IMG/VR virus record: IMGVR_UViG_3300023257_000007
Location: 1-64,000 of that record
DNA: 64,000 nt
Reading direction: 5' to 3' (one strand)
The translations under genes and the position numbers were made by a program. Positions within the stretch are counted from its first letter, which is position 1. Every line of letters starts with the position of its first letter. Under the pieces are notes generated by a model that worked only from the letters and a program-made list of their open reading frames with translations, searched no databases and was not told the DNA's origin. Shown piece by piece: positions 1 to 47,881 of the stretch.

Positions 1-1137
1 CATTGTACAGACAAATTAAAAAATAAAATTAAACAAGATTTAAAAACCTGTTGCGAAAAAAATTCAATTAAAAGTCTACCCAATAGAAATAAAAACTACT
101 GGTTAATTAGAGGATGGTCTATGGAAGAAACAACACTTAAAATAAACGATATTAATAATTTGAGAAAGAAAATTAAAATTACTATTTTAAATAAAGAATT
201 TTGGATTGAAAAAGGTTTCACCGAAATAGAATCTATCAAAAAAATCTCAAAAATTCAAAGTGAAAGATCCAAGAAAATGCATAAGAAAAGAAAAGAAAAT
301 CCAGAAAATTACAAACCAATACTATCACCATTTACTGAAGAATTTTGGATTAAAAAGGGTATTACAAATAAAGAAGAAATTAATTTTAAAATAAAATCTC
401 AAAGAAAACTTAATGTAGAATTTTGGTTAAATAGAGGACATAACACCAAAGAATCAATTAAATTAGTTAAAAATTATCAATCTGAAAATTCAAAAAAACG
501 TCAAGATAAATGGAAAGATAAAAAACATTTAGTTGATTATTTAAAACAATTTAACACAAATATAGAATTTTATTTAGATAAAGGTTTTTCTATAGAAAAA
601 AGCCAAGAATTATTAAAAGAAAGACAATCAACTTTCACTTTAGAAAAATGTATTATTAAACATGGATTTAAAAATGGTACTTTAATATTTAATAATAGAC
701 AAACAAAATGGAAAGAAAAAGTCTTTAATGAAAATACTTGTATTGCTAATGGTACGAGTATGATATCAGAAAAATATATACATTCTGTGATAAGCAAAAT
801 TAACAATGATAAAATTACAGATCTTTTCAAATATGGAAAAGACGAAAAATTTATTTATGATAATAAATTAAAAAAATGTTACAAATATGATTTAACTTAT
901 AAGAAAAAAATAGTGGAATTTCATGGTGATTTTTGGCATTGTAACCCAAAAATATATAATGAAAATGAAATACACAAAGTAATTAAATTAACAAGCAAAG
1001 AAATTTGGGCTAATGATAAAAGGAAAAAAGATTGTGCTGTTGAGAATAATTATGATATTTTTATAATTTGGGAAAGCGAATATTTACATGATCCTGTCAA
1101 AAGTATTGAAAATACAATAAAATTTTTAGAATTATGA
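1..1137 (+). CDS. Vsr-like (PD-(D/E)xK) homing endonuclease, 5' end outside window
   Basis: Frame is open from base 1 (HCTDKLKNK...YWLIRGWS) into the listed ATG at 121. C-terminal IVEFHGDFWHCNP...IFIIWESEY motif; paralogous to 43142 and 49194. Confidence 0.8.
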   Translation, partial: HCTDKLKNKIKQDLKTCCEKNSIKSLPNRNKNYWLIRGWSMEETTLKINDINNLRKKIKITILNKEFWIEKGFTEIESIKKISKIQSERSKKMHKKRKENPENYKPILSPFTEEFWIKKGITNKEEINFKIKSQRKLNVEFWLNRGHNTKESIKLVKNYQSENSKKRQDKWKDKKHLVDYLKQFNTNIEFYLDKGFSIEKSQELLKERQSTFTLEKCIIKHGFKNGTLIFNNRQTKWKEKVFNENTCIANGTSMISEKYIHSVISKINNDKITDLFKYGKDEKFIYDNKLKKCYKYDLTYKKKIVEFHGDFWHCNPKIYNENEIHKVIKLTSKEIWANDKRKKDCAVENNYDIFIIWESEYLHDPVKSIENTIKFLEL

Positions 1138-1496
1138 AAATTACAATAAAAGATTTATATGATTTTAACTTAGAAACTGACTTAATAAATAAAGGTAAAT
1201 TTAAAGTTAAAACTAAGAATGGTTTTAAAAAAATTGATGCAATTGATATAACTGACATTAGTTCAAAAATTGTGATAAATACAAAAAGTGATAAAATTAA
1301 AACATCACCAGATCATCTTTTATCAAAATTTGACGATTGGATATTTGTCAAAAATTTAAAAATTGGTGATTATATTGATTGTATTAATGGTCCCGAACAA
1401 ATTACCAATATTGAAATTGATGAAATAGTAGAAGAATTATATGATATTCAAGTTGATGGAGAAGAATATTTTGCAAATAACTTTAGAACTCATAAT
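1134..1496 (+). mobile_element. Split intein C-half (gp46)
   Basis: TSPDHLL block B, LYDIQV block F, terminal HN followed by Ser. No N-terminal Cys/Ser block A in this ORF. Confidence 0.85.
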
Positions 1497-3101
1497 TCAT
1501 CTTTACGACAATGTATAGACTTTGCACTATTCCATAAAGTTAGAGGTAAAACAAAAAAAGTTCTTTCAGTTAAGAAACTACCAAATAGACACAATAAAAG
1601 TCTTTATGTTGGATTATGGTTTGATAATTATAAAGGTGATGAAATAGTTATTAAAAAATATCTAGAACCACAAAAATTCGAAATGACAATAAATGAAGAA
1701 CCATTTGAGAAAAAATTCTCTAAAATGACTGATCCTGAAAAAGAAAATCTACTAGGATTTAGTTATAACATATTTCAAAACTTCATATCAATGTCACTTA
1801 ATAACTTCAAAAATTTTGTATCATTATCTAAAGATGATAAAGAAACAGTCCTAAATAAATTATTTAATTTAGAAGAACTAAATTCACTACAAAATATAAC
1901 AAAACAACTAAAAAAAGACTTACAAAAGAACAGATCTAGTGTTTATGAAGAATTGCAAGAGAAAAAGACAAGAATAGATGAATTAAATAATATTATATCA
2001 AAATTAAACTCTAATAATAGTATAAATAAAGTAGAAAGAATCAAAGAGATTAATATCAAATTAGTTGAATATAAAAACAGAAGTGGTATATTAACCAATA
2101 AGAATATCGAAATTAGTAAAGAAATTGAAGTTTATAATCAAAAATTAATGAAATTTGCTAGTAATAAAACACAAGGAGATAGAATGATTACAACAAACGA
2201 ACTTAAAATTGAAAACATAGAAGAAAAATTAGATGCTTTCAATAAAGGAATATGTCCTATATGTGATAGTAATTTAAATACTAATAAACATAAATCAAAA
2301 ATTGGTGAATTTAGTACAACTGTAAAAAAATTAAATGAAAAAAACGAAGAAGTTGAAGAACAATTAATAAAAGTAGTAACACTTGATACAAAATATAGAA
2401 ATAAAAAGAGTACTTTGTATAATGAATTAAGTAAGAATAAACAAGAACTTGATTTAATCAAAGAAAATTTTACTAAATTTAAATTAGAAAAATCTTCATT
2501 AAAACAACAAAACTTTGATTCTATTGATGAATTAAACAAAGAAAAAGAGCTACACAAAAAAAGAGTTAATTCATTATTACCTAATTTTAATAAATATAAA
2601 GATAAAGAACCAATTTATGATGAACTAATTAATATATTTTCAGGTGATGTTATTAGAAATAATATTATTAAAAATATATTAAAATCAGTTAATTATTATC
2701 TTCAAGATTTTTTAACCAAATTAGAATATCCATATGACGTTGAATTGGACATGAATTTCAATGCCATAATTAAAGAAAAAGAAAAAATCGACCCTGAAAC
2801 ATTATCTGGAGGAGAAGATAAAAAAATTAATGTTGCTATTGCTTTATCATATTTGTGTTTAATACTTGATGTTAAACATAGTAATTTATTATTTTTAGAT
2901 GAAATATTTGATTCAATTGACATTGAAAGTGTAGACTTATTATTGAACTTACTTAAAGAAATATCAGAAAAATATAAAATCAATATTATCATTGTTCACC
3001 ATAATGATGTTAATTTACAACATTTTGATAGAATAATTAGAACTAAAAAAGATTTATTTAGTGATATTGAAGAAATTGATTTAGTAAATGAGAAGAATTA
3101 A
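1134..3101 (+). CDS. gp46/SbcC/Rad50-like recombination ATPase, C-terminal fragment preceded by split-intein C-half
   Basis: First 121 aa are Hint-like and end FANNFRTHN|S. Then coiled coil, CPIC zinc hook, LSGGE signature, LFLDE Walker B. Walker A is absent. Confidence 0.88.
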   Translation: MKITIKDLYDFNLETDLINKGKFKVKTKNGFKKIDAIDITDISSKIVINTKSDKIKTSPDHLLSKFDDWIFVKNLKIGDYIDCINGPEQITNIEIDEIVEELYDIQVDGEEYFANNFRTHNSSLRQCIDFALFHKVRGKTKKVLSVKKLPNRHNKSLYVGLWFDNYKGDEIVIKKYLEPQKFEMTINEEPFEKKFSKMTDPEKENLLGFSYNIFQNFISMSLNNFKNFVSLSKDDKETVLNKLFNLEELNSLQNITKQLKKDLQKNRSSVYEELQEKKTRIDELNNIISKLNSNNSINKVERIKEINIKLVEYKNRSGILTNKNIEISKEIEVYNQKLMKFASNKTQGDRMITTNELKIENIEEKLDAFNKGICPICDSNLNTNKHKSKIGEFSTTVKKLNEKNEEVEEQLIKVVTLDTKYRNKKSTLYNELSKNKQELDLIKENFTKFKLEKSSLKQQNFDSIDELNKEKELHKKRVNSLLPNFNKYKDKEPIYDELINIFSGDVIRNNIIKNILKSVNYYLQDFLTKLEYPYDVELDMNFNAIIKEKEKIDPETLSGGEDKKINVAIALSYLCLILDVKHSNLLFLDEIFDSIDIESVDLLLNLLKEISEKYKINIIIVHHNDVNLQHFDRIIRTKKDLFSDIEEIDLVNEKN

Positions 3102-10104: not shown

Positions 10105-11751
10105 ATGTTATTAACAAAGAATATTAAAATTAAAATAAATAATAGGTATATAAAATATTATCAAAATCTTGGATATCAGGTAAAAGGCGGTCAAGAATGT
10201 GAAATAAAAATAGAAGATTTATCAAAAAAAAGCCACGCTTTTGTTGATGTTAAATGTGATATATGTCAAGAAGAAAAAACAATTAAATATTATAATTATA
10301 CTGAAAATATACTAAATCAGGGTTTTTACACTTGTAAAAAATGTAAACATCATAAGACAAAAATCACAAATCTAGAGAAATATGGTGTAGAATGTACATT
10401 ACAATCTGATGATGTTTTAGAAAAGATAAAAAATAAAAACATAGAAAAATTTGGCACAGACCATTATTCAAAAACAAATGAATTTAAAGAAAAAATAAAA
10501 GAGACAAATCTAGAAAAATATGGTGTTGAAAGTAATATGCAATCAATCGAATTTAAGGAAAAATCTATATTATTTAATCTGAAAAGTTACGGTGTTGATC
10601 ATTATTCAAAGACTAATGAATTTAAAGAAAAAGTAAAAAAAACAAATTTAGAAAAATATGGTGTTGATCATTATTCAAAAACTGATGAATTCAAGGAGAA
10701 GTTGTCTAAAAACCATTTTTTAAAACTTAAAAAAGAAAACAACAATCTTAAAGAGATAAATGGTGATGAATATGTGATATATTGTGATAAATGTGATAAA
10801 GATTATACTATTCATAAATGGTTATATAAAAATAGAAAAAAGAAATATAAAACTAATACTTGTTTATATTGTAATCCTATAAATTCTTCTAAATCTGGAA
10901 TGGAATTAAAATTATTAGAATTTATAAAAGATAATTATAATGAAAAAATTGTTTATGGTAATAGAAAAATTATACCACCTAAAGAATTAGATATTTATTT
11001 ACCAAATTTAAAATTGGCATTTGAGTTTAATGGTGTATATTGGCACAACGAATTAAACAAACATAACAAATATCATTTAGAAAAAACAGAAAAATGTCTA
11101 GAAAAAGGAATACAATTAATTCATGTTTTTGAAGATGATTGGATTTATAAACAAGATATAGTAAAATCTAGAATTTTGAATTTAATTGGAAAATCTAAAA
11201 AAATATTTGCTCGAAAATGTGAAATTAAATTAGTCAATGATAATAAAGTTATTAGAAATTTTCTAGATGAAAATCATTTACAAGGGTTTGTAGGGAGCAA
11301 AATAAAATTGGGTTTGTATTATAATGATGAATTAGTAAGTTTAATGACTTTTGGAAATTTGAGAAAACCTTTAAATCAGTCAAAAAAGGATGGGTCATTT
11401 GAATTATTAAGATTTTGTAATAAATTGAGCATTTATGTTATTGGTGGTGCTTCAAAATTATTTAATTATTTCTTAAAAAACTATGAAATTTGTGAAATAA
11501 TAAGTTATGCGGATAGAAGTTGGAGTAATGGAAATTTATATGAAAAACTTGGTTTTGAATTTATACATAAAACACAACCTAACTATTATTATATAATAGG
11601 CAATCTTAGAAAACATAGATTTAATTTCAGGAAAGATAAATTAATTAAAGAAGGTTTTGATTCAAATAAAACCGAACATGAAATAATGTTAGAAAGGGAA
11701 ATATATCGAATATATGATAGCGGTAGTTTAAAATATAGTTATTTAATATAA
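10105..11751 (+). CDS. Hef-like free-standing homing endonuclease
   Basis: Paralog of 7642; KTNLEKYGV repeats; ELDIYLPNLKLAFEFNGVYWH. Confidence 0.8.
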   Translation: MLLTKNIKIKINNRYIKYYQNLGYQVKGGQECEIKIEDLSKKSHAFVDVKCDICQEEKTIKYYNYTENILNQGFYTCKKCKHHKTKITNLEKYGVECTLQSDDVLEKIKNKNIEKFGTDHYSKTNEFKEKIKETNLEKYGVESNMQSIEFKEKSILFNLKSYGVDHYSKTNEFKEKVKKTNLEKYGVDHYSKTDEFKEKLSKNHFLKLKKENNNLKEINGDEYVIYCDKCDKDYTIHKWLYKNRKKKYKTNTCLYCNPINSSKSGMELKLLEFIKDNYNEKIVYGNRKIIPPKELDIYLPNLKLAFEFNGVYWHNELNKHNKYHLEKTEKCLEKGIQLIHVFEDDWIYKQDIVKSRILNLIGKSKKIFARKCEIKLVNDNKVIRNFLDENHLQGFVGSKIKLGLYYNDELVSLMTFGNLRKPLNQSKKDGSFELLRFCNKLSIYVIGGASKLFNYFLKNYEICEIISYADRSWSNGNLYEKLGFEFIHKTQPNYYYIIGNLRKHRFNFRKDKLIKEGFDSNKTEHEIMLEREIYRIYDSGSLKYSYLI

Positions 11752-12345
11752 TCCCATTTTTTTTGCATTGTGAAGGTCTGGATTTTCTTTCCAAAACCAT
11801 TCCCAATATTTTTCTAAATTATCATAAGGTAATTGGTTATTTTCACAAAAAAACTCTTTTAATCCTTTTGGTAATTCAGGTAATTCAGTTAATTGGTTAT
11901 TATAACAATTTAATACTTCTAACCCTTTTGGTAATTCAGGTAATTCAGTTAATTTGTTATTACCACAATATAAATATTTTAATCCTTTAGGTAATTCAGG
12001 TAATTTAGTTAATTGGTTATTATAACAATATAAATATTTTAACCCTTTTGGTAATTTAGGTAATTCAGTTAATTGGTTATTATAACAATATAAATATTCT
12101 AACCCTTTTGGTAATTCAGGCAATTCAGTTAATTGGTTATAACGACAAAATAAATATTTTAATCCTTTTGGTAATTCAGGCAATTCAGTTAATTGGTTAT
12201 AACAACAAAATAATTTTTCTAATCCTTCTGGTAATTCAGGTAATTCTGTTAAATTTAATCTAGCTAAATCTAATGTTTTGCCATCATCACTTAAATGGTC
12301 TTTAATTAATTGGTTTTCTGAATATGTTTTTAAATATCTCATCAT
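11743..12345 (-). CDS. Leucine-rich repeat protein (IpaH/SspH-type 20-aa LRR)
   Basis: Seven LPELPKGLxYLYCxxNQLTE repeats. Confidence 0.9.
   Translation of the reverse strand: MMRYLKTYSENQLIKDHLSDDGKTLDLARLNLTELPELPEGLEKLFCCYNQLTELPELPKGLKYLFCRYNQLTELPELPKGLEYLYCYNNQLTELPKLPKGLKYLYCYNNQLTKLPELPKGLKYLYCGNNKLTELPELPKGLEVLNCYNNQLTELPELPKGLKEFFCENNQLPYDNLEKYWEWFWKENPDLHNAKKMGLY
11831..12250 (-). repeat. Coding tandem repeat, ~7 x 60 bp
   Basis: Units recur every 60 bp (11861, 11921, ... 12221) and encode the LRRs. Confidence 0.92.
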
Positions 12346-12438
12346 AATTTATTATTTTACTTTTAATCGGTCAAAGATAAAATTATATATATTAAATAAT
12401 GACTCTTCGTTCTTTACTTGACGACCATTCAATAATAT

Positions 12439-14692: not shown

Positions 14693-16504
14693 TTAATTCT
14701 TAAAAATGTATTTATAATTACCACTATTATATATTCTATAAATACCTCTTTCTATCATTATTTGATGTTCACTTTTATCTAAATCAAAACCTTCTTTAAC
14801 CAACACGTCTTTTCTATATCCAAACCTATATTTTCTCACACCATCTACTACATAATAATAATTTGGTTTAGAAATATGAGATAATTCAAAACCTAAATTT
14901 TCATATAATTTGCCATTTGAATGTGATCTATCTGCATAACTTATTATTTTTTTAAAAAAATAATTTTTAGTAAAATGTTTAAACAATTTTGAAGCACCAC
15001 CAATAACATTAGTATTTAACTTATTACAAAATCTTATAAGTTCAAATTCACCTTCTACACTAGAAGAATTTTGAGACTTTCTTTTTTTACCAAAAGTCAT
15101 TAAAGAAACTAACTCATTTTCATAATAAAGACCTAGTTTAATACTAGAACCAACAAAACCTTGTAAATGATTATCATCTAGAAATTTTCTTATCAATTTA
15201 TTATCTTCAATAACTTTAATTTCACATTTTCTTGCATAAATTCTATTTGGTGTTTTACCTATTTTGTTTAATATTATGGATTTAACTATGTCTTGTTTAT
15301 ACAACCAATCATCTTCCCAAATATGTGTTAGCTGAACACCTTTTTTAAAACAATTATCTGTTTTATTTAAATGATAATTATTATCTTTATTTAATTCGTT
15401 ATGCCAATACAAACCATTAAATTCAAAAGCTAATTTCAAATTTGGTAAATAAATATCTAATTCTAATGGTTTAATAACATCTCTATCTGATGTTTCAATG
15501 ACACCAGTATAATTTTCTTCAATAAAACTTAATAATTGTATTTCTAATCCTGATGTGTGTTGATTAATTGGGTTGCAAATAGTACACAATTCAGTTTTAC
15601 ATTTAACTCTATTTGAAAACAAGGATGAATTAATAATATAATCATGTCCTTTATCACATAATATTGTATATTCTTTATTATCAAAATCAATATTCAAAAA
15701 ATTTAAATAACTATAATTACTTAAAAGATATTTTTTAGTTCTTTTTCTATTATTCTCTTTAATATTTTTTATAACTTTTTCTGTTTGAAAATAATTTTCA
15801 ACACCATATCTTTCTAAGATTGTAGTTTTTCTTTTTTCTTTTAATTCATTAGAATATGATGGATTTTCAACACCATAATTTTCCATTAATGATTTTATTG
15901 ATTTCTCTCTAATTTCTTCTGATTGTTGAGGATACTCTACACCATACTTTTCTAAATTTGTTTTTTTAATTTTATCTTTTATTTCTTCTGATTCAAACGG
16001 ATTTTCAACACCATATTTTTCTAGATTTGTTTTGGATATTTTATCACGTATCTCTTTATTAGATAGAGAAAATTCAACACCATACTTTTCTAGATTTGTT
16101 TGTTTTTGCTTTCTTTTTACACACTCATTTTGAGTAAAATGTTCGACACCATATTTTTCCAAACTTGTTTTTTTAACTCTATCAACATATTCCTCAGTCT
16201 GTGTATAATATTCACTGCCATATTTTTCAAATGTTGTCTTTTTAACTTTTTCTTGAGCACACTTAGAACTACAAGCATAAAACCCACCATTATTAATATT
16301 TTTAACATATTTTTGATACATTAAATCCTTTTCATTATTACAAAAATCACATTTTACTTTTATTTTTACATGACTACCATCAGATAAATATTTAGGATGT
16401 ATATTTAAAATATCTCCCAATTGTACATCTTTCGAATATTCTTCTTTTAGTTTACTTAAATTTCTTTTTGTTACTTTAATTAATGTTTTTTCTGTTAAAA
16501 TCAT
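14693..16504 (-). CDS. Hef-like free-standing homing endonuclease
   Basis: Paralog of 7642/10105 with more KTNLEKYGVE repeats. Confidence 0.8.
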   Translation of the reverse strand: MILTEKTLIKVTKRNLSKLKEEYSKDVQLGDILNIHPKYLSDGSHVKIKVKCDFCNNEKDLMYQKYVKNINNGGFYACSSKCAQEKVKKTTFEKYGSEYYTQTEEYVDRVKKTSLEKYGVEHFTQNECVKRKQKQTNLEKYGVEFSLSNKEIRDKISKTNLEKYGVENPFESEEIKDKIKKTNLEKYGVEYPQQSEEIREKSIKSLMENYGVENPSYSNELKEKRKTTILERYGVENYFQTEKVIKNIKENNRKRTKKYLLSNYSYLNFLNIDFDNKEYTILCDKGHDYIINSSLFSNRVKCKTELCTICNPINQHTSGLEIQLLSFIEENYTGVIETSDRDVIKPLELDIYLPNLKLAFEFNGLYWHNELNKDNNYHLNKTDNCFKKGVQLTHIWEDDWLYKQDIVKSIILNKIGKTPNRIYARKCEIKVIEDNKLIRKFLDDNHLQGFVGSSIKLGLYYENELVSLMTFGKKRKSQNSSSVEGEFELIRFCNKLNTNVIGGASKLFKHFTKNYFFKKIISYADRSHSNGKLYENLGFELSHISKPNYYYVVDGVRKYRFGYRKDVLVKEGFDLDKSEHQIMIERGIYRIYNSGNYKYIFKN

Positions 16505-41836: not shown

Positions 41837-42087
41837 TTTGTATAATTTAATTTTTCAATTTTAATGACGTATATTTCTTCACCCAATTCTCTTTTTTCTC
41901 TTTCTTCAGCATTATTAATAGCAAATTTTAAAGTTTTTCCATCTTCAGATGATATTATTTGTGTAGGTTTTAACTTTTCATCTTTAAATATTTTTTGAAG
42001 TTTTTCTGTTATCTCATAATGAAAATCTTCAAATTCCTGCTCTATCACAGAAAAATCTTTTTCTCTAACATAATTAATTTTTTTCAT
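41833..42087 (-). CDS. Hypothetical protein
   Basis: Overlapping operon ORF. Confidence 0.55.
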   Translation of the reverse strand: MKKINYVREKDFSVIEQEFEDFHYEITEKLQKIFKDEKLKPTQIISSEDGKTLKFAINNAEEREKRELGEEIYVIKIEKLNYTK

Positions 42088-42105
42088 TCGTTTTTTCTTA
42101 TTTTT

Positions 42106-43161
42106 TTAAAATCCCCAATCATCAAAGTTTTCAAACTCATCTTTATTTTTTTGAATTGTCTGTTGTATTGAACCACTAAATAAACTATTTAATACCGATA
42201 ATCTTTTATTAATATCTGGTAAACCTACTGGTTCTAAAAACCTATTAGCAATTGCCAAAAATGTTTTTTCAAATTGAGTATCATAATCTATCAATACTCT
42301 TTCTTTTTCAGTTATTTCATACGGATGAAAACTTCTCATATAAGCAAACCTCTCTCCAAGAGTATGGTTACAAAAATACCATTTAACTCGACCACCTTTT
42401 AACAAATCATATTTAGTTTTAAACTCGCTATTTTTATTTAAAAGAAAATTATGTAAAGCGGCGGCTTTAACTGAAAAATGAGCACCTTTAACACAATTAA
42501 CACCAATTTGATCATCAACTACTTTATCTCTATAATTTGATAAAGAAGTCGTCATACTAATATCTTCAATATCAGAGGCTTTAAATTGATTTTTAAGATC
42601 TTTCATAATTTTTAAAACCTCACGTATATTTAACGTATCAGGATTTTTAAATAAATAATTAATAAATTCCCAAACACCACCTTTCTGCTTTTGACCTCTA
42701 ACAAATATTGGTGTTGAAGACCTTACAATATCTACACCTTTTGGAAAAAAATGTTCCATATCTTCATAAAAAATACCATCTTCCCAAACCACATTATTAA
42801 TATAATGTTTCTTTTCAAGATGCATGGCAGATTTATTAACAGTTTCTAATTCAAAATCATGAATATTTTTAACACCATACTTTTTAGCATATTGGTCTAA
42901 ATATTTAACAAATGTGTCTTTTACATACAATCTATCAAGGGTTAATATAAATTCAAGAGGATCACCTTCATAATCACAAGAGTCCATTATTGGTTGAAAC
43001 GACAAATATAAACTATTATGAACTAATAAATTATTAGCAATAAAGGTGTGAGTTTCATCATCAACTTCTATATCATAAACATATTCTTCTTCTCCAAAAT
43101 TACCTACACATTCAATTTCTGAAATTTCAACCAATTCATAATTATAACATATATTTTCCAT
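42106..43161 (-). CDS. B-family DNA polymerase C-terminal fragment with split-intein C-half (49 aa)
   Basis: YVYDIEV...FIANNLLVHN|SLY, then ELE...KKHY and KGVDIVRSS thumb motifs. Confidence 0.9.
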   Translation of the reverse strand: MENICYNYELVEISEIECVGNFGEEEYVYDIEVDDETHTFIANNLLVHNSLYLSFQPIMDSCDYEGDPLEFILTLDRLYVKDTFVKYLDQYAKKYGVKNIHDFELETVNKSAMHLEKKHYINNVVWEDGIFYEDMEHFFPKGVDIVRSSTPIFVRGQKQKGGVWEFINYLFKNPDTLNIREVLKIMKDLKNQFKASDIEDISMTTSLSNYRDKVVDDQIGVNCVKGAHFSVKAAALHNFLLNKNSEFKTKYDLLKGGRVKWYFCNHTLGERFAYMRSFHPYEITEKERVLIDYDTQFEKTFLAIANRFLEPVGLPDINKRLSVLNSLFSGSIQQTIQKNKDEFENFDDWGF

Positions 43162-44314
43162 ATATTTCTTTTATTAATTTTTTAATACTCGGCAAATCAC
43201 TTTCCCAAATAACAATGATATCTATATCATGATCCTTTTTTAGAAGTGATAATTTTTCTTCATCTTTTTTCCATATATCAGATGATAATTCATTACTAAA
43301 CGGATTAGGTTTATCATCATGTTTAAATTTTTTAGGATTAGCATGAAAAACATCACCATTATATTCTATACCTAAATTTAATTCTTTTATATAATAATCT
43401 ATAAAAACATATCGACCAGTAGATAACATCTTACCATATTCTTTATTATTACATTTTTCATAAAAATATGTTTTAAAATCTTTTGATATTTCTTTATCTA
43501 ATTTCCACAAATAATCCTGTGAAGATTTTGATGCTGGATAATTCCTTATCTTAGAATAAAATTGTTGTAATTTAATTAAAGCGTCATTTTTACCGTATAT
43601 TCTTATATAATTAGATAAATTGTGTGCTTTTTGTTTACACAATTCATCCCATTTTAATTTACCATGTTTTAACACATAATATTCTTTACTTTTTGTTTCA
43701 ATTTGTTTTTTAACATAATTTTCATATTTTATTTTACCGAATTTTTTGCCATGTTTTTTTATCAAATTTTCTAATGTAACAGATCTTGATTTATTATAAT
43801 TATCAAAATCATCTTTATTCCAACCATGTTTTTCTTTTTTATATTCAAATAAATTTGATTTTCGTTGTTTATCACAATAGATTTCCCATCTTTCAACTCC
43901 TTCATTTACACCATATTTTAAAATATAATTTTCCTTTGTTCTAACGTAGTTTAAATTCTTCCATATTTCAGATTCTTTTTCTGGTATATTAAATGCATAT
44001 GTTGTTATCTTATTTACCATGTTAAATATTCTAGCCCTATTCTTATTTTTATACTCAGGATATTTTTCTATCAAACAATCTTCACAAACACTTAAATTAT
44101 AAATTTTACCATTCACCGATTTAAATGTTTTATAAGATTTGCCTTTGTATCCAAATTTTCTTACAGTAAATACAGAATTATAATAAAATATTGGACCATT
44201 ACAAATTAAACACTTAACAGAATTTTTATCATAAAAATCTTGAATTTCCTCATAATCATCTTTATTGATATTAAATTTAAATTTTTGTAATTTATTTTTC
44301 ATATGGTGACACAT
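43142..44314 (-). CDS. Vsr-like homing endonuclease inside the fractured polymerase gene
   Basis: GIEYNGDVFHANP...IVIWESD; overlaps both pol fragments. Confidence 0.8.
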   Translation of the reverse strand: MCHHMKNKLQKFKFNINKDDYEEIQDFYDKNSVKCLICNGPIFYYNSVFTVRKFGYKGKSYKTFKSVNGKIYNLSVCEDCLIEKYPEYKNKNRARIFNMVNKITTYAFNIPEKESEIWKNLNYVRTKENYILKYGVNEGVERWEIYCDKQRKSNLFEYKKEKHGWNKDDFDNYNKSRSVTLENLIKKHGKKFGKIKYENYVKKQIETKSKEYYVLKHGKLKWDELCKQKAHNLSNYIRIYGKNDALIKLQQFYSKIRNYPASKSSQDYLWKLDKEISKDFKTYFYEKCNNKEYGKMLSTGRYVFIDYYIKELNLGIEYNGDVFHANPKKFKHDDKPNPFSNELSSDIWKKDEEKLSLLKKDHDIDIIVIWESDLPSIKKLIKEIYGKYML

Positions 44315-45305
44315 CTTTATCTCTATATATCCTTAAAATTTTATCAGTTATTTTCATTTCAGAAGGTTTTACTTCAAATTGTTCACCGTCTCTAAAAACT
44401 ATCATAGAATGATCATTTGTTACGAAAATTTCCTCACCTGTTTTTATTTTAATTTTCCATTTTTGTTTAATAACCTTATGTCTTATAACTCTTTTTACTG
44501 GTGCATAATATAGCTTTTTTTCAGAACACCAATTTAAGATTTTTTCACCAGTTTTAACACTCTCATGTCCCTTCAACGTACTCTCACCCACATTTAATGT
44601 ATTTTCGTTGTAAAATTCTTCTATTGTCTTTTCACCATTATTTGTGATAATTACACTATCCTTGTCAACCGAATCCGTATCACCATAAACACACAATTCA
44701 TCTTTATGAAATTTCGTACTATAAGTTTCTTTATCATCTTTTGTCATTTCTGTAAAACCTGGCATTTCTTCTCTTTCAGAAATCACAGAACCATCAATTT
44801 GTTCAACATTATCTACAAAATTATGAAGATGTCTCTTATATTTAATATTATAAATTTTATCTTCAATTTTAATAGAATCTTTGTGTTCTTCTAATTTATC
44901 AATATCAACATTCCATTCTATTAGTAAATCATGTAAAGTATTATTACCCCTTCCAATTATTCTATTTCTATTATTCATCATATACCAAACATCACTATCA
45001 TCAGTTACAATATACGTAAATTCTAATAACTTATGAACTTCAATATCATGATACCATTCTTCATAAAAATATTTTTCTATTTTATTTAACATAAATAAAA
45101 TTACATCTCTACCATGTGCTGTAATAGCATTTGCAATATCTTTATTAGATACTACAAATTTAGGGTGAGCAAAAGCACCATAAGTTCCGTTAATCACTAA
45201 TTTTAGTGCCAATTGCATTGCTTTATTGTAGTTATATTCTGATTCTACTTTTGCGATTTTCTTTTTAAGATTCTCGATTTTTTTCTTTTTCTCGGCGAAC
45301 GTCAT
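44292..45305 (-). CDS. B-family DNA polymerase middle fragment with split-intein N-half (126 aa)
   Basis: Motif B QLALKLVINGTYG; YGDTD|SVDKDS; TNDHS block B. No exonuclease domain or motif A. Confidence 0.9.
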   Translation of the reverse strand: MTFAEKKKKIENLKKKIAKVESEYNYNKAMQLALKLVINGTYGAFAHPKFVVSNKDIANAITAHGRDVILFMLNKIEKYFYEEWYHDIEVHKLLEFTYIVTDDSDVWYMMNNRNRIIGRGNNTLHDLLIEWNVDIDKLEEHKDSIKIEDKIYNIKYKRHLHNFVDNVEQIDGSVISEREEMPGFTEMTKDDKETYSTKFHKDELCVYGDTDSVDKDSVIITNNGEKTIEEFYNENTLNVGESTLKGHESVKTGEKILNWCSEKKLYYAPVKRVIRHKVIKQKWKIKIKTGEEIFVTNDHSMIVFRDGEQFEVKPSEMKITDKILRIYRDKDVSPYEK

Positions 45306-45341
45306 ATTATTAGATAATTTTTAATTTTAAAAATAAATACA

Positions 45342-46943
45342 TTAAAAGTTTAATGAATATTTTATATTACCACTGTTATATATTCTATAAATACCTCTTT
45401 CTAACATTATTTCGTGTTCACTTTTATTAGGATCATAACCTTCTCTAACTAAAACATCTTTTCTAAAATTATACCTATATAATCGTTTTAAATTTTTACC
45501 ATCAAAATAATGATAATTCGGTTTTGTGTTATGAACGAATTTAAATTCCAATTTTTCATATAGATTTCCTTTACTCCAGCTTCTATCAGCATAAGTAATT
45601 ATTTCACCCGGATTATAATTTCTGATAAAATATTTAAATAATTTTGATGCACCACCAACAACATTAATATTTAATTTGTTACAAAACCTTAACAATTCAT
45701 ACTCTCCTTCTATACTTTTAGACCCCATTAATTTTCTTTTTTTACCAAAGGTCATTAGAGATACTAATTCATCTTCATAATAAAGACCTATTTTAACAAA
45801 AGAACCAACAAAACCTTGAAGATGATTATCATTTAAAAAATTTCTAATCAATTTATTATCTATTATCTCTTTAATTATAGTTTTTCTAGCATATATTTTA
45901 TCAGACTTTCCAATCATATTTAATATTCTAGACTTGACAATTTCTTTTTGGTTAAACCATTCATCTTCCCAAATATGTATTAATTGAACACCTTTTTTTA
46001 AACAATTGTTTGTTTTATTTAAATGATAATCCTTATCCTTATAAAGTTCTGAATGCCAATACAAACCATTAAATTCAAAAGCTAGATTTAAATCTGGTAA
46101 ATAAATATCTAATTCTTTTCCATCCAAGATCTCTTTATCACTTGTTATTATTTCATAATTATAGTTTTCTTTAATAAAATTCACGATTTCTAATTCTTTA
46201 CCTGAAATCTTATAATCTAATGTATTACAAACTGTGCATAATATTGTTTTTTGTATTTTATATCTTTGATATAAATTTTTGCTATTAATATTAAAATAAT
46301 GATCTTTACCACAATCACATTTAACATCTATCGTTCGATCAGTATTTAAAATATAATCTGTTATATTATATTCCGATAATTTAAATAATATATCTTTTTC
46401 CCACCTTTTATATGTTAACAAATAATATGATTCTGTTTGTGTATACCATTCTTTTCCATATTTTTCAAGATTAGTTTTCTTTATTTTCTCTCTAATTTCA
46501 TATGAAGAAAGTATCTCTTCCACGCCATATTTTTCAAGATTTGTTTTTTTAATTTTTTCTTTGACATCTTTATCTAATAATGTACAAGTAACGCCATATT
46601 TCTTGAGGTTTGTTTGTTTTGTTTTATCTTTTATTTCTTTTATGTGTTGTGGATTTTCAACGCCATATTTTTCTAACATTGTATTTTTTCTTTTAATAGA
46701 AGAACATTTTTTACAACTATAAAAACCTTGTCTTTTTTTATTTTCTAAATATTTATGATATCTTAGTTGTTTTTCATCTGAACATATCTCACAAACAGCA
46801 ATTACTTTAACATGTGAATTTTGTGGCAAATCATTAACATCAATGTCCAATGTTTCACCATTATTACAAACATAATTTTTAGATCTATAATATGTTACAT
46901 TACGATATGTTATATTAACATCAATTCTACTATTTTTAATCAT
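45342..46943 (-). CDS. Hef-like free-standing homing endonuclease
   Basis: Fourth paralog; ELDIYLPDLNLAFEFNGLYWH. Confidence 0.8.
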   Translation of the reverse strand: MIKNSRIDVNITYRNVTYYRSKNYVCNNGETLDIDVNDLPQNSHVKVIAVCEICSDEKQLRYHKYLENKKRQGFYSCKKCSSIKRKNTMLEKYGVENPQHIKEIKDKTKQTNLKKYGVTCTLLDKDVKEKIKKTNLEKYGVEEILSSYEIREKIKKTNLEKYGKEWYTQTESYYLLTYKRWEKDILFKLSEYNITDYILNTDRTIDVKCDCGKDHYFNINSKNLYQRYKIQKTILCTVCNTLDYKISGKELEIVNFIKENYNYEIITSDKEILDGKELDIYLPDLNLAFEFNGLYWHSELYKDKDYHLNKTNNCLKKGVQLIHIWEDEWFNQKEIVKSRILNMIGKSDKIYARKTIIKEIIDNKLIRNFLNDNHLQGFVGSFVKIGLYYEDELVSLMTFGKKRKLMGSKSIEGEYELLRFCNKLNINVVGGASKLFKYFIRNYNPGEIITYADRSWSKGNLYEKLEFKFVHNTKPNYHYFDGKNLKRLYRYNFRKDVLVREGYDPNKSEHEIMLERGIYRIYNSGNIKYSLNF

Positions 46944-47047
46944 TTTACAAAAGTCCCATTTTTACCATTGCTTATTATATATTAAAAAACACAAGTGAAA
47001 AATAAATTTATATATATAATAATGAATAAAAATCATTTAGTTTAAAA

Positions 47048-47881
47048 ATGCCTTATAGAGACGAATTATCAGTTAAAAGAGAAATAGTTATGTCAATCAA
47101 TAATATGATTGATAAATATGTTAATCAAGGGATTAGTTTCACTGATCTTAGCAAACATTTAAGGAAAGATTCTGCTCTAACAAATTTAATGAATGATTTA
47201 AAAGGTAAAAACTCAAATTTAAGAAATCCTGGTATTGAATTCTTTAATTCTAATCTAGAATACAAAAATAAAGTTAGACAGTATCTGAACGAAGTTATTA
47301 AAGATAGAATAGCTTTTGAAAAAGATAAAAGCATTCAAAATTTTGAGTCTTTCACTAAAAATGAACCAAATGATATTATGAAACCTAAAAATTTTAAAGA
47401 TTATTTACATATAAATGAAATTAAACTTCCTGTAATGAGATTAGATGAAATACTTGATGATATTGGTAACGCAGGAAATACACATAAAAAAGTTATAGCA
47501 ACATTTTTCAAAACCTACGTTGACTATATAGATCTTGTTGATAACAAGAAACATCATTTTAAAATCAATGATATGTCAGGTGATATAATGGGTAATAATA
47601 GAGTGACATTTGATGCTATTATTTTTAAAAATAATGAAATACAATCAATAGAAAATAATATTATAAAATACGCTTTAGGTGAATTCTACTCACAAATTCC
47701 AGACACATTAAATATATTTGATATTCAATTAAAACCTATGTCTTTTATTAATAAAACTGATTTGATGGAAGTATTTAAAAATATGTTAACATTCGAACAA
47801 ACTATTAATATTATTACTAATATTACTGGTTTTAATTATGATGGTGAAATGGGTGATTTTTTTATTTGGAGTAAAAAATAA
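47048..47881 (+). CDS. Hypothetical protein
   Basis: Long ORF; internal KNFKDYLHINE. Confidence 0.7.
   Translation: MPYRDELSVKREIVMSINNMIDKYVNQGISFTDLSKHLRKDSALTNLMNDLKGKNSNLRNPGIEFFNSNLEYKNKVRQYLNEVIKDRIAFEKDKSIQNFESFTKNEPNDIMKPKNFKDYLHINEIKLPVMRLDEILDDIGNAGNTHKKVIATFFKTYVDYIDLVDNKKHHFKINDMSGDIMGNNRVTFDAIIFKNNEIQSIENNIIKYALGEFYSQIPDTLNIFDIQLKPMSFINKTDLMEVFKNMLTFEQTINIITNITGFNYDGEMGDFFIWSKK

Follow-up and report, generated by a model that had tools for sequence, protein, structure and literature searches.

A T4-type DNA polymerase probably encoded by three genes, with an endonuclease-fractured split intein at motif C, in a very large phage

Introduction

In ‘fractured genes’, as described in the parts of Dassa et al. 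(2009; PMC2677866) on which we draw here, the two halves of a split intein lie on the same strand around a free-standing, often Vsr-like, homing-endonuclease gene. Such genes are mainly phage DNA-metabolism genes from environmental metagenomes, the hosts named in those parts being gp41, DnaE, NrdA, NrdJ, IMPDH, terminase and DNA ligase. The same parts cite cyanobacterial DnaE and Nanoarchaeum equitans PolB as polymerases that depend on trans-splicing, as well as the gp43A and gp43B proteins of T4-like Aeromonas phages, which are encoded by two cistrons and assemble non-covalently (Petrov and Karam, 2004; Petrov et al., 2006), a homing-endonuclease gene lying between the two in one case. Inteins of phage polymerases have also been followed in the laboratory: the naturally split, cysteine-less Aes123 PolB1 intein (PDB 9HTH), from the PolB of a T4-like Aeromonas phage, trans-splices in vitro with an efficiency of ~30% (PMC11923092), and trans-splicing has been shown experimentally for the PolB16 OarG intein, which follows an N-extein ending in ...GDTD and is atypically split, with an N-intein of 15 aa (PMC10189870). 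The cultured 225-kb Tenacibaculum phage PTm1 (AP019524) is annotated with an ‘intein-containing split DNA polymerase precursor’, a ‘VSR endonuclease’ and a ‘DNA polymerase’. Here we describe a locus of this kind in the 64,000 nucleotides (hereafter the window) with which IMG/VR record IMGVR_UViG_3300023257_000007 begins; they come from a giant phage of salt-lake metagenomes whose T4-type family B polymerase is very probably encoded by three genes, the products of two of them being joined by an endonuclease-fractured split intein. Since an already separate gp43B-like half has been split again by the intein, the intact enzyme would need three gene products and trans-splicing.

Results

Two polymerase fragments that abut at motif C

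The locus consists of three overlapping minus-strand open reading frames (ORFs), 44292-45305 (337 aa), 43142-44314 (390 aa) and 42106-43161 (351 aa), the first and last of which hold the polymerase fragments (Table 1). The original prediction, made from the letters alone, had read the first as running from motif B in the fingers to a 126-aa N-intein and the last as opening with a 49-aa C-intein, and both readings were borne out by motifs and by the Pfam DNA_pol_B and Intein_splicing profiles. The N-extein matches DNA_pol_B over residues 5-82, as well as phrog_262/1918; it holds motif B as KLVINGTYG at residues 34-42, with every position of the KxxxNxxYG pattern present, and stops at ...VYGDTD, residue 211. 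Positions 485-584 and 619-852 of the phrog_262 profile are matched, the latter by the C-extein, and motif B, motif C (YGDTD/S, the slash marking the junction) and the thumb of a T4-type family B polymerase (gp43) are all present across the two fragments.

As a reference for the junction we used an uninterrupted 566-aa homologue (L004:5797-7497) from LR756501, a 735-kb uncultured phage, which is one single ORF and reads ...MYGDTDSYYLSY... The two exteins were compared with it separately and piecewise, no spliced sequence being built. Residues 6-212 of ORF 44292-45305 align to residues 53-249 of the homologue (BLASTP, E 4e-32) and residues 49-334 of ORF 42106-43161 to its residues 248-534 (BLASTP, 55% identity, E 5e-116), and the exteins therefore abut exactly at DTD/S, where splicing had been predicted to rebuild a catalytic YGDTD-S. 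Judged from the two sequences, the spliced C-terminal half would measure 211 + 302 = 513 aa.

Table 1. Coordinates of the polymerase pieces, the intein halves and the other fractured genes. Positions are those of the window unless another record is named.
Feature	Position	Strand	Content and evidence
Polymerase N-extein, residues 1-211	44673..45305	-	Second finger helix with motif B, an insertion, motif C to YGDTD
Polymerase N-intein, 126 aa + stop, residues 212-337	44292..44672	-	Ser1 (SVDKDSVI), NX motif RH, block B TNDH
Vsr-like free-standing homing-endonuclease gene, 390 aa	43142..44314	-	phrog_22677, E 9e-46
Polymerase C-intein, 49 aa	43015..43161	-	Block F YVYDIEVDDETHTF, block G NLLVHN
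Polymerase C-extein, 302 aa + stop	42106..43014	-	From Ser+1 (SLYLSF...): remaining palm and thumb, T4-type family B polymerase
Second free-standing homing-endonuclease gene, 533 aa, DUF7487 type	45342..46943	-	phrog_3339, E 4e-127; Pfam DUF7487
Candidate exonuclease + motif A half, 489 aa	L180:2001-3470 (G002)	+	FFVDIENE, YDFASLYP; Pfam exo1 and DNA_pol_B
Terminase N-extein + short N-intein	48602-49126	+	Intein after P-loop SRQTGK/C
Vsr-like endonuclease gene in terminase	49194-50180	+	
Terminase C-intein, 153 aa, then Terminase_6N	50150-52477	+	Block B; intein ends ...ILSHN/T
SbcC-like 71-aa ORF with short N-intein	just before the window (G000)		
Vsr-like endonuclease gene in SbcC-like gene	1-1137	+	
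SbcC-like C-intein, 120 aa, + extein	1134-3101	+	Intein ends ...FRTHN/S

A complete but divided class 1 intein

The features of a class 1 intein are complete across the two fragments (Ser1, block B TNDH, blocks F/G, terminal His-Asn and Ser+1). Ser212, the Ser1 of block A, stands directly after the host motif YGDTD, and blocks F/G (YVYDIEVDDETHTF...NLLVHN/S) occupy residues 28-50 of ORF 42106-43161, Ser50 being the +1 residue. The NX motif (Arg/Lys-His) of Ser1 inteins, as defined in PMC10189870, is found as RH within VIRHKV, and in an alignment both RH and TNDH are kept in the alleles of LR756500 and PTm1, which occupy the same site with N-inteins of 118-119 aa and C-inteins of 43 aa. The N-intein matches the Pfam Intein_splicing profile over residues 218-324 with 36.7 bits (cut-off 35.8), and its best match among solved structures is PDB 9hth, the Aes123 PolB1 intein (E 3.7e-11). 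Two non-catalytic cysteines lie in the C-intein. The net charge is +3 for the N-intein and -13 for the C-intein, opposite charges of the two halves being a property of natural split inteins according to the parts of Dassa et al. (2009; PMC2677866) used here. By analogy with the Aes123 PolB1 and PolB16 inteins, this intein would be active in trans-splicing.

An intein that merely holds the polymerase pieces together, giving a non-covalent three-chain enzyme without splicing, has to be weighed at this point, as split-intein halves bind tightly unaided and natural split inteins are often inefficient in vitro, the ~30% of Aes123 PolB1 (PMC11923092) being an example. We consider this highly unlikely: Ser1, the Thr and His of block B, the Arg-His of the NX motif, the terminal His-Asn and Ser+1 have all been conserved, which an intein that does not splice would not lead one to expect; some 175 aa of intein would be left directly behind the second catalytic Asp in motif C; and splicing is known for the allelic Aes123 and PolB16 inteins. 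Trans-splicing is the reading that we retain.

Homing-endonuclease genes in and beside the intein

Between the intein halves lies ORF 43142-44314, which the original prediction had not mentioned. Its start is possibly the second ATG, at 44302, and it shares 23 nt with the ORF of the N-intein and 20 nt with that of the C-intein. The PTm1 gene product in the equivalent position, annotated ‘VSR endonuclease’, has 32% identity to it (E 2e-23), and its motifs E-[YF]-x-G-D..H.NPK...W-[ED]-S recur in two sister genes within the window. The Vsr fold itself has little direct support: Pfam DUF559 was matched below threshold only, in two of the four members of the Vsr-like family (E 0.002), no PDB sequence match was returned for either the protein query or the family profile, and the fold model of the nuclease domain, with a predicted local distance difference test (pLDDT) score of 41.7, was unusable. 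Four Vsr-like ORFs were found in 600 kb, by which we mean the joined 433.7-kb contigs described below plus contig G002 (166,601 bp); all four are followed by an ORF that opens with the end of a C-intein (...HN + Ser/Thr/Cys), and the start of an N-intein is visible in the upstream ORF for three. Flanked by intein halves on the same strand, ORF 43142-44314 presents the ‘fractured gene’ layout of Dassa et al. (2009).

The second homing-endonuclease gene, 45342-46943, lies 36 nt upstream of polymerase fragment 44292-45305 and has homologues at L051:7605-9308, inside the split intein of LR756500, and at L180:3467-5071 on G002, adjoining the candidate gene for the exonuclease half. This family (phrog_3339, ~530-600 aa, DUF7487 with a PD-(D/E)xK-like core) has at least seven copies in the 600 kb, for example at window positions 14693-16504, and one copy adjoins each polymerase half.

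Arrangement of the polymerase among relatives

Relatives were retrieved from IMG/VR with a C-extein alignment as query, a single-protein scan with ORF 42106-43161 having given only the phage's own contig. Among the 78 C-extein loci classified, one of which is that contig, the DTD/S site is uninterrupted in 53, the ORF starts with a C-intein there in 20 (19 without the phage's own contig), a contiguous intein is present in one, and five are not classifiable, one of these being possibly also uninterrupted. With the phage's own contig set aside, a split intein occupies the site in 19 of 72 classifiable relatives. Among near relatives, at 62-66% identity, alleles with and without the intein both occur, as is expected of a homing element.

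The exonuclease/motif-A half was found as a stand-alone ORF of ~495 aa in 115 of 115 scorable IMG/VR loci, stopping in each case ~100 residues past motif A, without motif B or C, and it lies within 5 kb of the C-terminal half in only 5 of the 78 loci. In this clade the one half comprises the exonuclease and motif A (~490 aa) and the other motif B, motif C and thumb (~510-570 aa), and the break between them falls by alignment at the finger tip, at roughly residues 500-525 of RB69 gp43. Separate N-terminal and C-terminal halves are a trait of the clade and not peculiar to this phage. The closest sequenced relatives are the huge-phage genomes LR756500 (462 kb) and LR756501, neither record being annotated. 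Both presumably come from the set of Al-Shayeb et al. (2020).

Source records and assembly

The window opens a 348,222-bp record (G001) and recurs unchanged at positions 85476-149475 of another IMG/VR record (G000; 344,634 bp). G000 and G001 overlap over 259,159 bp at 100% identity, the polymerase locus included, and join into 433,697 bp (433.7 kb) without a terminal repeat; that they might be circular permutations of one complete genome was rejected, as they overlap linearly and lack such a repeat. Extension of the joined contig by end patterns in IMG/VR contigs brought in one further contig and only 462 bp. CheckV completeness estimates of the contigs disagree (48%, 49% and 58%). Base composition in the window is 22-30% GC, strongly AT-rich. 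For window positions 42000-47100, between 0.83 and 0.99 of the sampled words were found in contigs of several public runs from different studies; the runs with this locus come from many studies and comprise salt-lake metagenomes as well as two of marine origin.

A split produced by misassembly, or by a chimera, would suit a source that is metagenomic, very AT-rich (24% GC) and rich in repeats, where contigs are interrupted by an IS605 element and by a dispersed repeat. The identity of the two records across the locus over 259 kb, the presence of the locus in contigs from several runs of different studies, and independent relatives that are split alike leave this explanation with next to no probability, and they contradict an assembly error at 45305-47048, which had been named beforehand as grounds for abandoning a split polymerase.

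The dispersed repeat is ~0.5 kb long, with copies of 80-86% identity that hold ORFs of 180-200 aa, and occurs at window positions ~11728-12359 and at about ten further sites across the joined contigs and G002; G000 breaks where it does because its start falls inside one copy. The IS605-type element holds a TnpB gene encoding 388 aa (Pfam OrfB_IS605, Cas12f1-like TNB and HTH_OrfB), found outside the window at G001:259161-260327 and at the end of G002. It sits in a 1.3-kb repeat at which several assemblies break, and three TnpB copies on G002 are 29-100% identical to the gene at G001:259161-260327.

The exonuclease/motif-A half

Fragment 44292-45305 opens with the second helix of the fingers, so that everything before it (N-terminal domain, exonuclease, motif A and first finger helix) must be encoded elsewhere. 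The absence of such a gene from the window, already stated in the original prediction, was confirmed, and extends to G000 (344.6 kb) and the joined 433.7 kb, which were searched with Pfam exo1, with the PTm1, LR756501 and LR756500 halves by tblastn and genome search, and with a motif regular expression. A stand-alone DnaQ-like 3'-5' exonuclease of 226 aa (G000:343818-344510, minus strand; phrog_25228, E 3.5e-46) is the only Pfam DNA_pol_B_exo1 match in G000; it is a separate gene and was rejected as the missing half.

A profile scan of IMG/VR led to contig IMGVR_UViG_3300022890_000011 (G002), which carries a candidate N-terminal half of 489 aa with endonuclease genes on both sides. The search elsewhere for an exonuclease/motif A gene, which had been proposed as a check, has in this way yielded a candidate that is probably of the same genome. 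At the point where G000 ends, the joined contigs match the final 1,304 bp of G002 with 99.9% identity. GC content is 25.5% in G002 and 25.3% in the joined contigs. The candidate half and the window's C-extein are each 55% identical to their counterparts in LR756501. The G002 polymerase-half region was present in four of four runs that hold the window locus, two of the four not being flagged as possible sources of the window DNA, with 0-1 differences from G002 in the longest run pieces and more in the low-depth X6 contigs. Only 20 of the 185 G002 ORFs of at least 100 aa match the joined contigs, mostly as members of multi-copy paralogue families and without collinear orthology, so that G002 is improbable as the orthologous stretch of a related phage.

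We conclude that G002 probably belongs to the same genome as the joined contigs; the linkage is not proven, because the identical overlap is the IS605-type TnpB element. In an alternative account the architecture is as described, but G002 is a different, co-occurring phage and the true N-terminal half lies in unassembled sequence. The sole identical overlap being a mobile element, the discordance of the CheckV estimates and the fact that co-occurrence in runs does not show physical linkage all speak for this account, and the few, non-collinear ORF matches, the equal GC content, the matching 55% identities to LR756501 and the presence of the region in every run tested speak for a common genome. 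We regard separate phages as unlikely, whilst granting them a real minority chance.

Each of the three polymerase pieces occurs once in the 600 kb. An intact polB elsewhere, which had been held to speak against a divided enzyme, was not found in the 600 kb, nor was any other family B polymerase piece (tblastn, Pfam DNA_pol_B) or Pol III alpha (PF07733), other polymerase families not having been searched. This bears on the possibility that the fragments are decaying relics of a polymerase destroyed by mobile elements, replication being left to another polymerase or to that of the host. Two homing-endonuclease genes crowd the locus within 5 kb, the N-terminal half is absent from the window's own contig and the stand-alone DnaQ-like exonuclease is present elsewhere, as decay might have it. 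None of the three ORFs is nevertheless disrupted, conservation extends to motifs B and C and to all catalytic residues of the intein, the C-extein is 55-66% identical to its relatives from end to end, and the same layout is found in PTm1, a cultured and viable phage, and in 19 other IMG/VR loci. Together with the failure to find a second replicative polymerase of the families searched, this makes decay extremely unlikely, and we keep to a working polymerase in three pieces.

A model of the complex of the 489-aa half and N-extein residues 1-211, also among the checks proposed, gave an interaction score (ipSAE) of 0.67 (median of three runs), the best control reaching 0.01; in a benchmark, 51 of 78 solved complexes attained this mark, as did 2 of 108 mismatched pairs. 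Agreement between the runs covers at least 78% of contacts, with partner pLDDT of at least 57. The modelled contacts bring residues 450-489 of the 489-aa half to residues 6-45 of the fragment, that is, the two finger helices together, and place the region of motif A against that of motif C. The model supports binding of the predicted partners. Taken with the 115 stand-alone halves and the gene on G002, it supports the proposal of the original prediction that a gp43B-like subunit was fractured further, so that at least three gene products and trans-splicing would be needed.

Other fractured genes

The large terminase is also fractured, at window positions 48602-52477 on the plus strand. We take its split to resemble the AceL-TerL intein as well as, in its atypically long C-intein, the terminase case in the parts of Dassa et al. 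consulted (PMC2677866). An SbcC/gp46-like ATPase is fractured in its P-loop (GKNGSGK/C) at window positions 1-3101 on the plus strand and in ~330 bp upstream of these in G000. A fourth Vsr-like gene, with a C-intein-like ORF (...LLLHN/C), lies at ~342.9-344.3 kb of G001.

Discussion

The polymerase of this very-large-phage clade was already in two genes. We envisage a mobile intein at motif C (YGDTD/S), into which a Vsr-like endonuclease gene was inserted at the usual endonuclease position, cutting the intein into two cistrons. The three overlapping minus-strand ORFs are probably co-transcribed and separately translated. The basic N-intein and acidic C-intein would then associate, and splicing by oxyester chemistry, with Ser1, Ser+1 and the terminal Asn, would release the 513-aa C-terminal half. 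This would bind the separately encoded 489-aa half non-covalently, through two antiparallel finger helices and the palm, to complete the enzyme.

Several observations weigh against this reading. The third gene lies off the window's contig, the exonuclease/motif-A half having been found nowhere in the joined sequence, and the link of G002 to this genome, probable as it is, rests on complementarity, composition and co-occurrence, the identical 1.3-kb overlap being an IS605-type TnpB element that is conceivably common to different genomes. The score of the complex may in part be memory of the single-chain RB69/T4 polymerase structures, and the N-terminal half of any clade member would probably score as well, so that the true partner is not singled out. 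The C-intein matches Pfam Intein_splicing at profile positions 120-155 (E 8e-6) with 26.2 bits, under the cut-off of 35.8, as is expected because it is a 49-aa fragment of a 155-position model. No RNA library is among the public runs with the locus; a scan for consensus promoters and terminators gave matches no commoner than in shuffled sequence and is uninformative on operon structure. With these points taken into account, a three-gene T4-type polymerase with two products joined by the fractured intein is still held with high confidence.

The case adds a well-documented instance of an essential replicative polymerase that would be rebuilt from three separately encoded polypeptides, in a phage among the largest genome classes, and its Ser1/Ser+1 split intein is a further natural allele of the cysteine-less PolB inteins used as protein-ligation tools. 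The fractured polymerase, terminase and SbcC-like genes together illustrate the heavy burden of homing endonucleases and inteins that core genes carry in huge phages. A bolder reading is that in a phage of at least 600 kb the polymerase, the large terminase and the SbcC/gp46-like ATPase all depend on trans-splicing, one family of Vsr-like endonuclease genes having fractured all three. The polymerase would in addition be put together from the products of three cistrons, one of which lies over 100 kb away. Should the three inteins differ in the efficiency or timing of splicing, trans-splicing could serve as a shared post-translational gate on replication, recombination and packaging and would not be a neutral scar. 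We think this doubtful.

Comparison with known systems

The arrangement is of an already documented kind, represented by the PTm1 annotation, Aes123 PolB1, PolB16, phages MIJ3/PA5oct and the fractured genes of Dassa et al. (2009), and it is ordinary because cultured and metagenomic phages already show an equal one; knowledge of polymerases or of inteins is unchanged by this case. In the parts of Dassa et al. (2009; PMC2677866) that we used, family B polymerases figure as precedents (the gp43 split and the N. equitans split intein) and not among the fractured hosts named. The gp43A/gp43B split cited there is without an intein and its genes are 2-3 kb apart, whereas in the clade described here the halves are usually unlinked.

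The Aes123 PolB1 and PolB16 inteins are, like this one, Ser1/Ser+1 class 1 inteins in phage PolB-type polymerases. The site of the Aes123 PolB1 split intein is identical, and an N-intein of ~120 aa with the NX (Arg/Lys-His) motif is common to the Aes123 PolB1 intein and the present one; trans-splicing has been shown experimentally for the Aes123 PolB1 and PolB16 inteins and is predicted for ours. In the Pseudomonas jumbo phages MIJ3/PA5oct a homing-endonuclease gene likewise lies within a split PolB intein, between orf153 and orf155 (PMC6892783). Blocks A, B, F and G are similar there (SVDGS..., TEDHS, ...ILVHNS) and the N-intein is 36-37% identical to ours by tblastn, but the intervening endonuclease is of the HNH type, and phage lineage and host are different.

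Of the two huge-phage relatives, LR756501 has an intein-less C-terminal half, 55% identical and 566 aa long, and a stand-alone N-terminal half of 504 aa that lies 116 or 618 kb away. LR756500 has an allelic split intein that holds a DUF7487-type endonuclease gene and not a Vsr-like one as here, and its N-terminal half lies 10 kb upstream. The closest layout is that of PTm1 (ORF-236/-239/-240/-241), where the polymerase is likewise in three pieces with the insertion at DTD/S: an exonuclease + motif A half of 497 aa, an N-extein fused to an N-intein (263 aa), the endonuclease (261 aa) and a C-intein fused to a C-extein (326 aa). Between PTm1 and this phage the N-intein is ~50% and the endonuclease 32% identical and the exteins only ~33%; the PTm1 N-terminal half is encoded by the same strand ~2 kb upstream, two ORFs intervening, whereas here it is outside the 433.7 kb of joined sequence.

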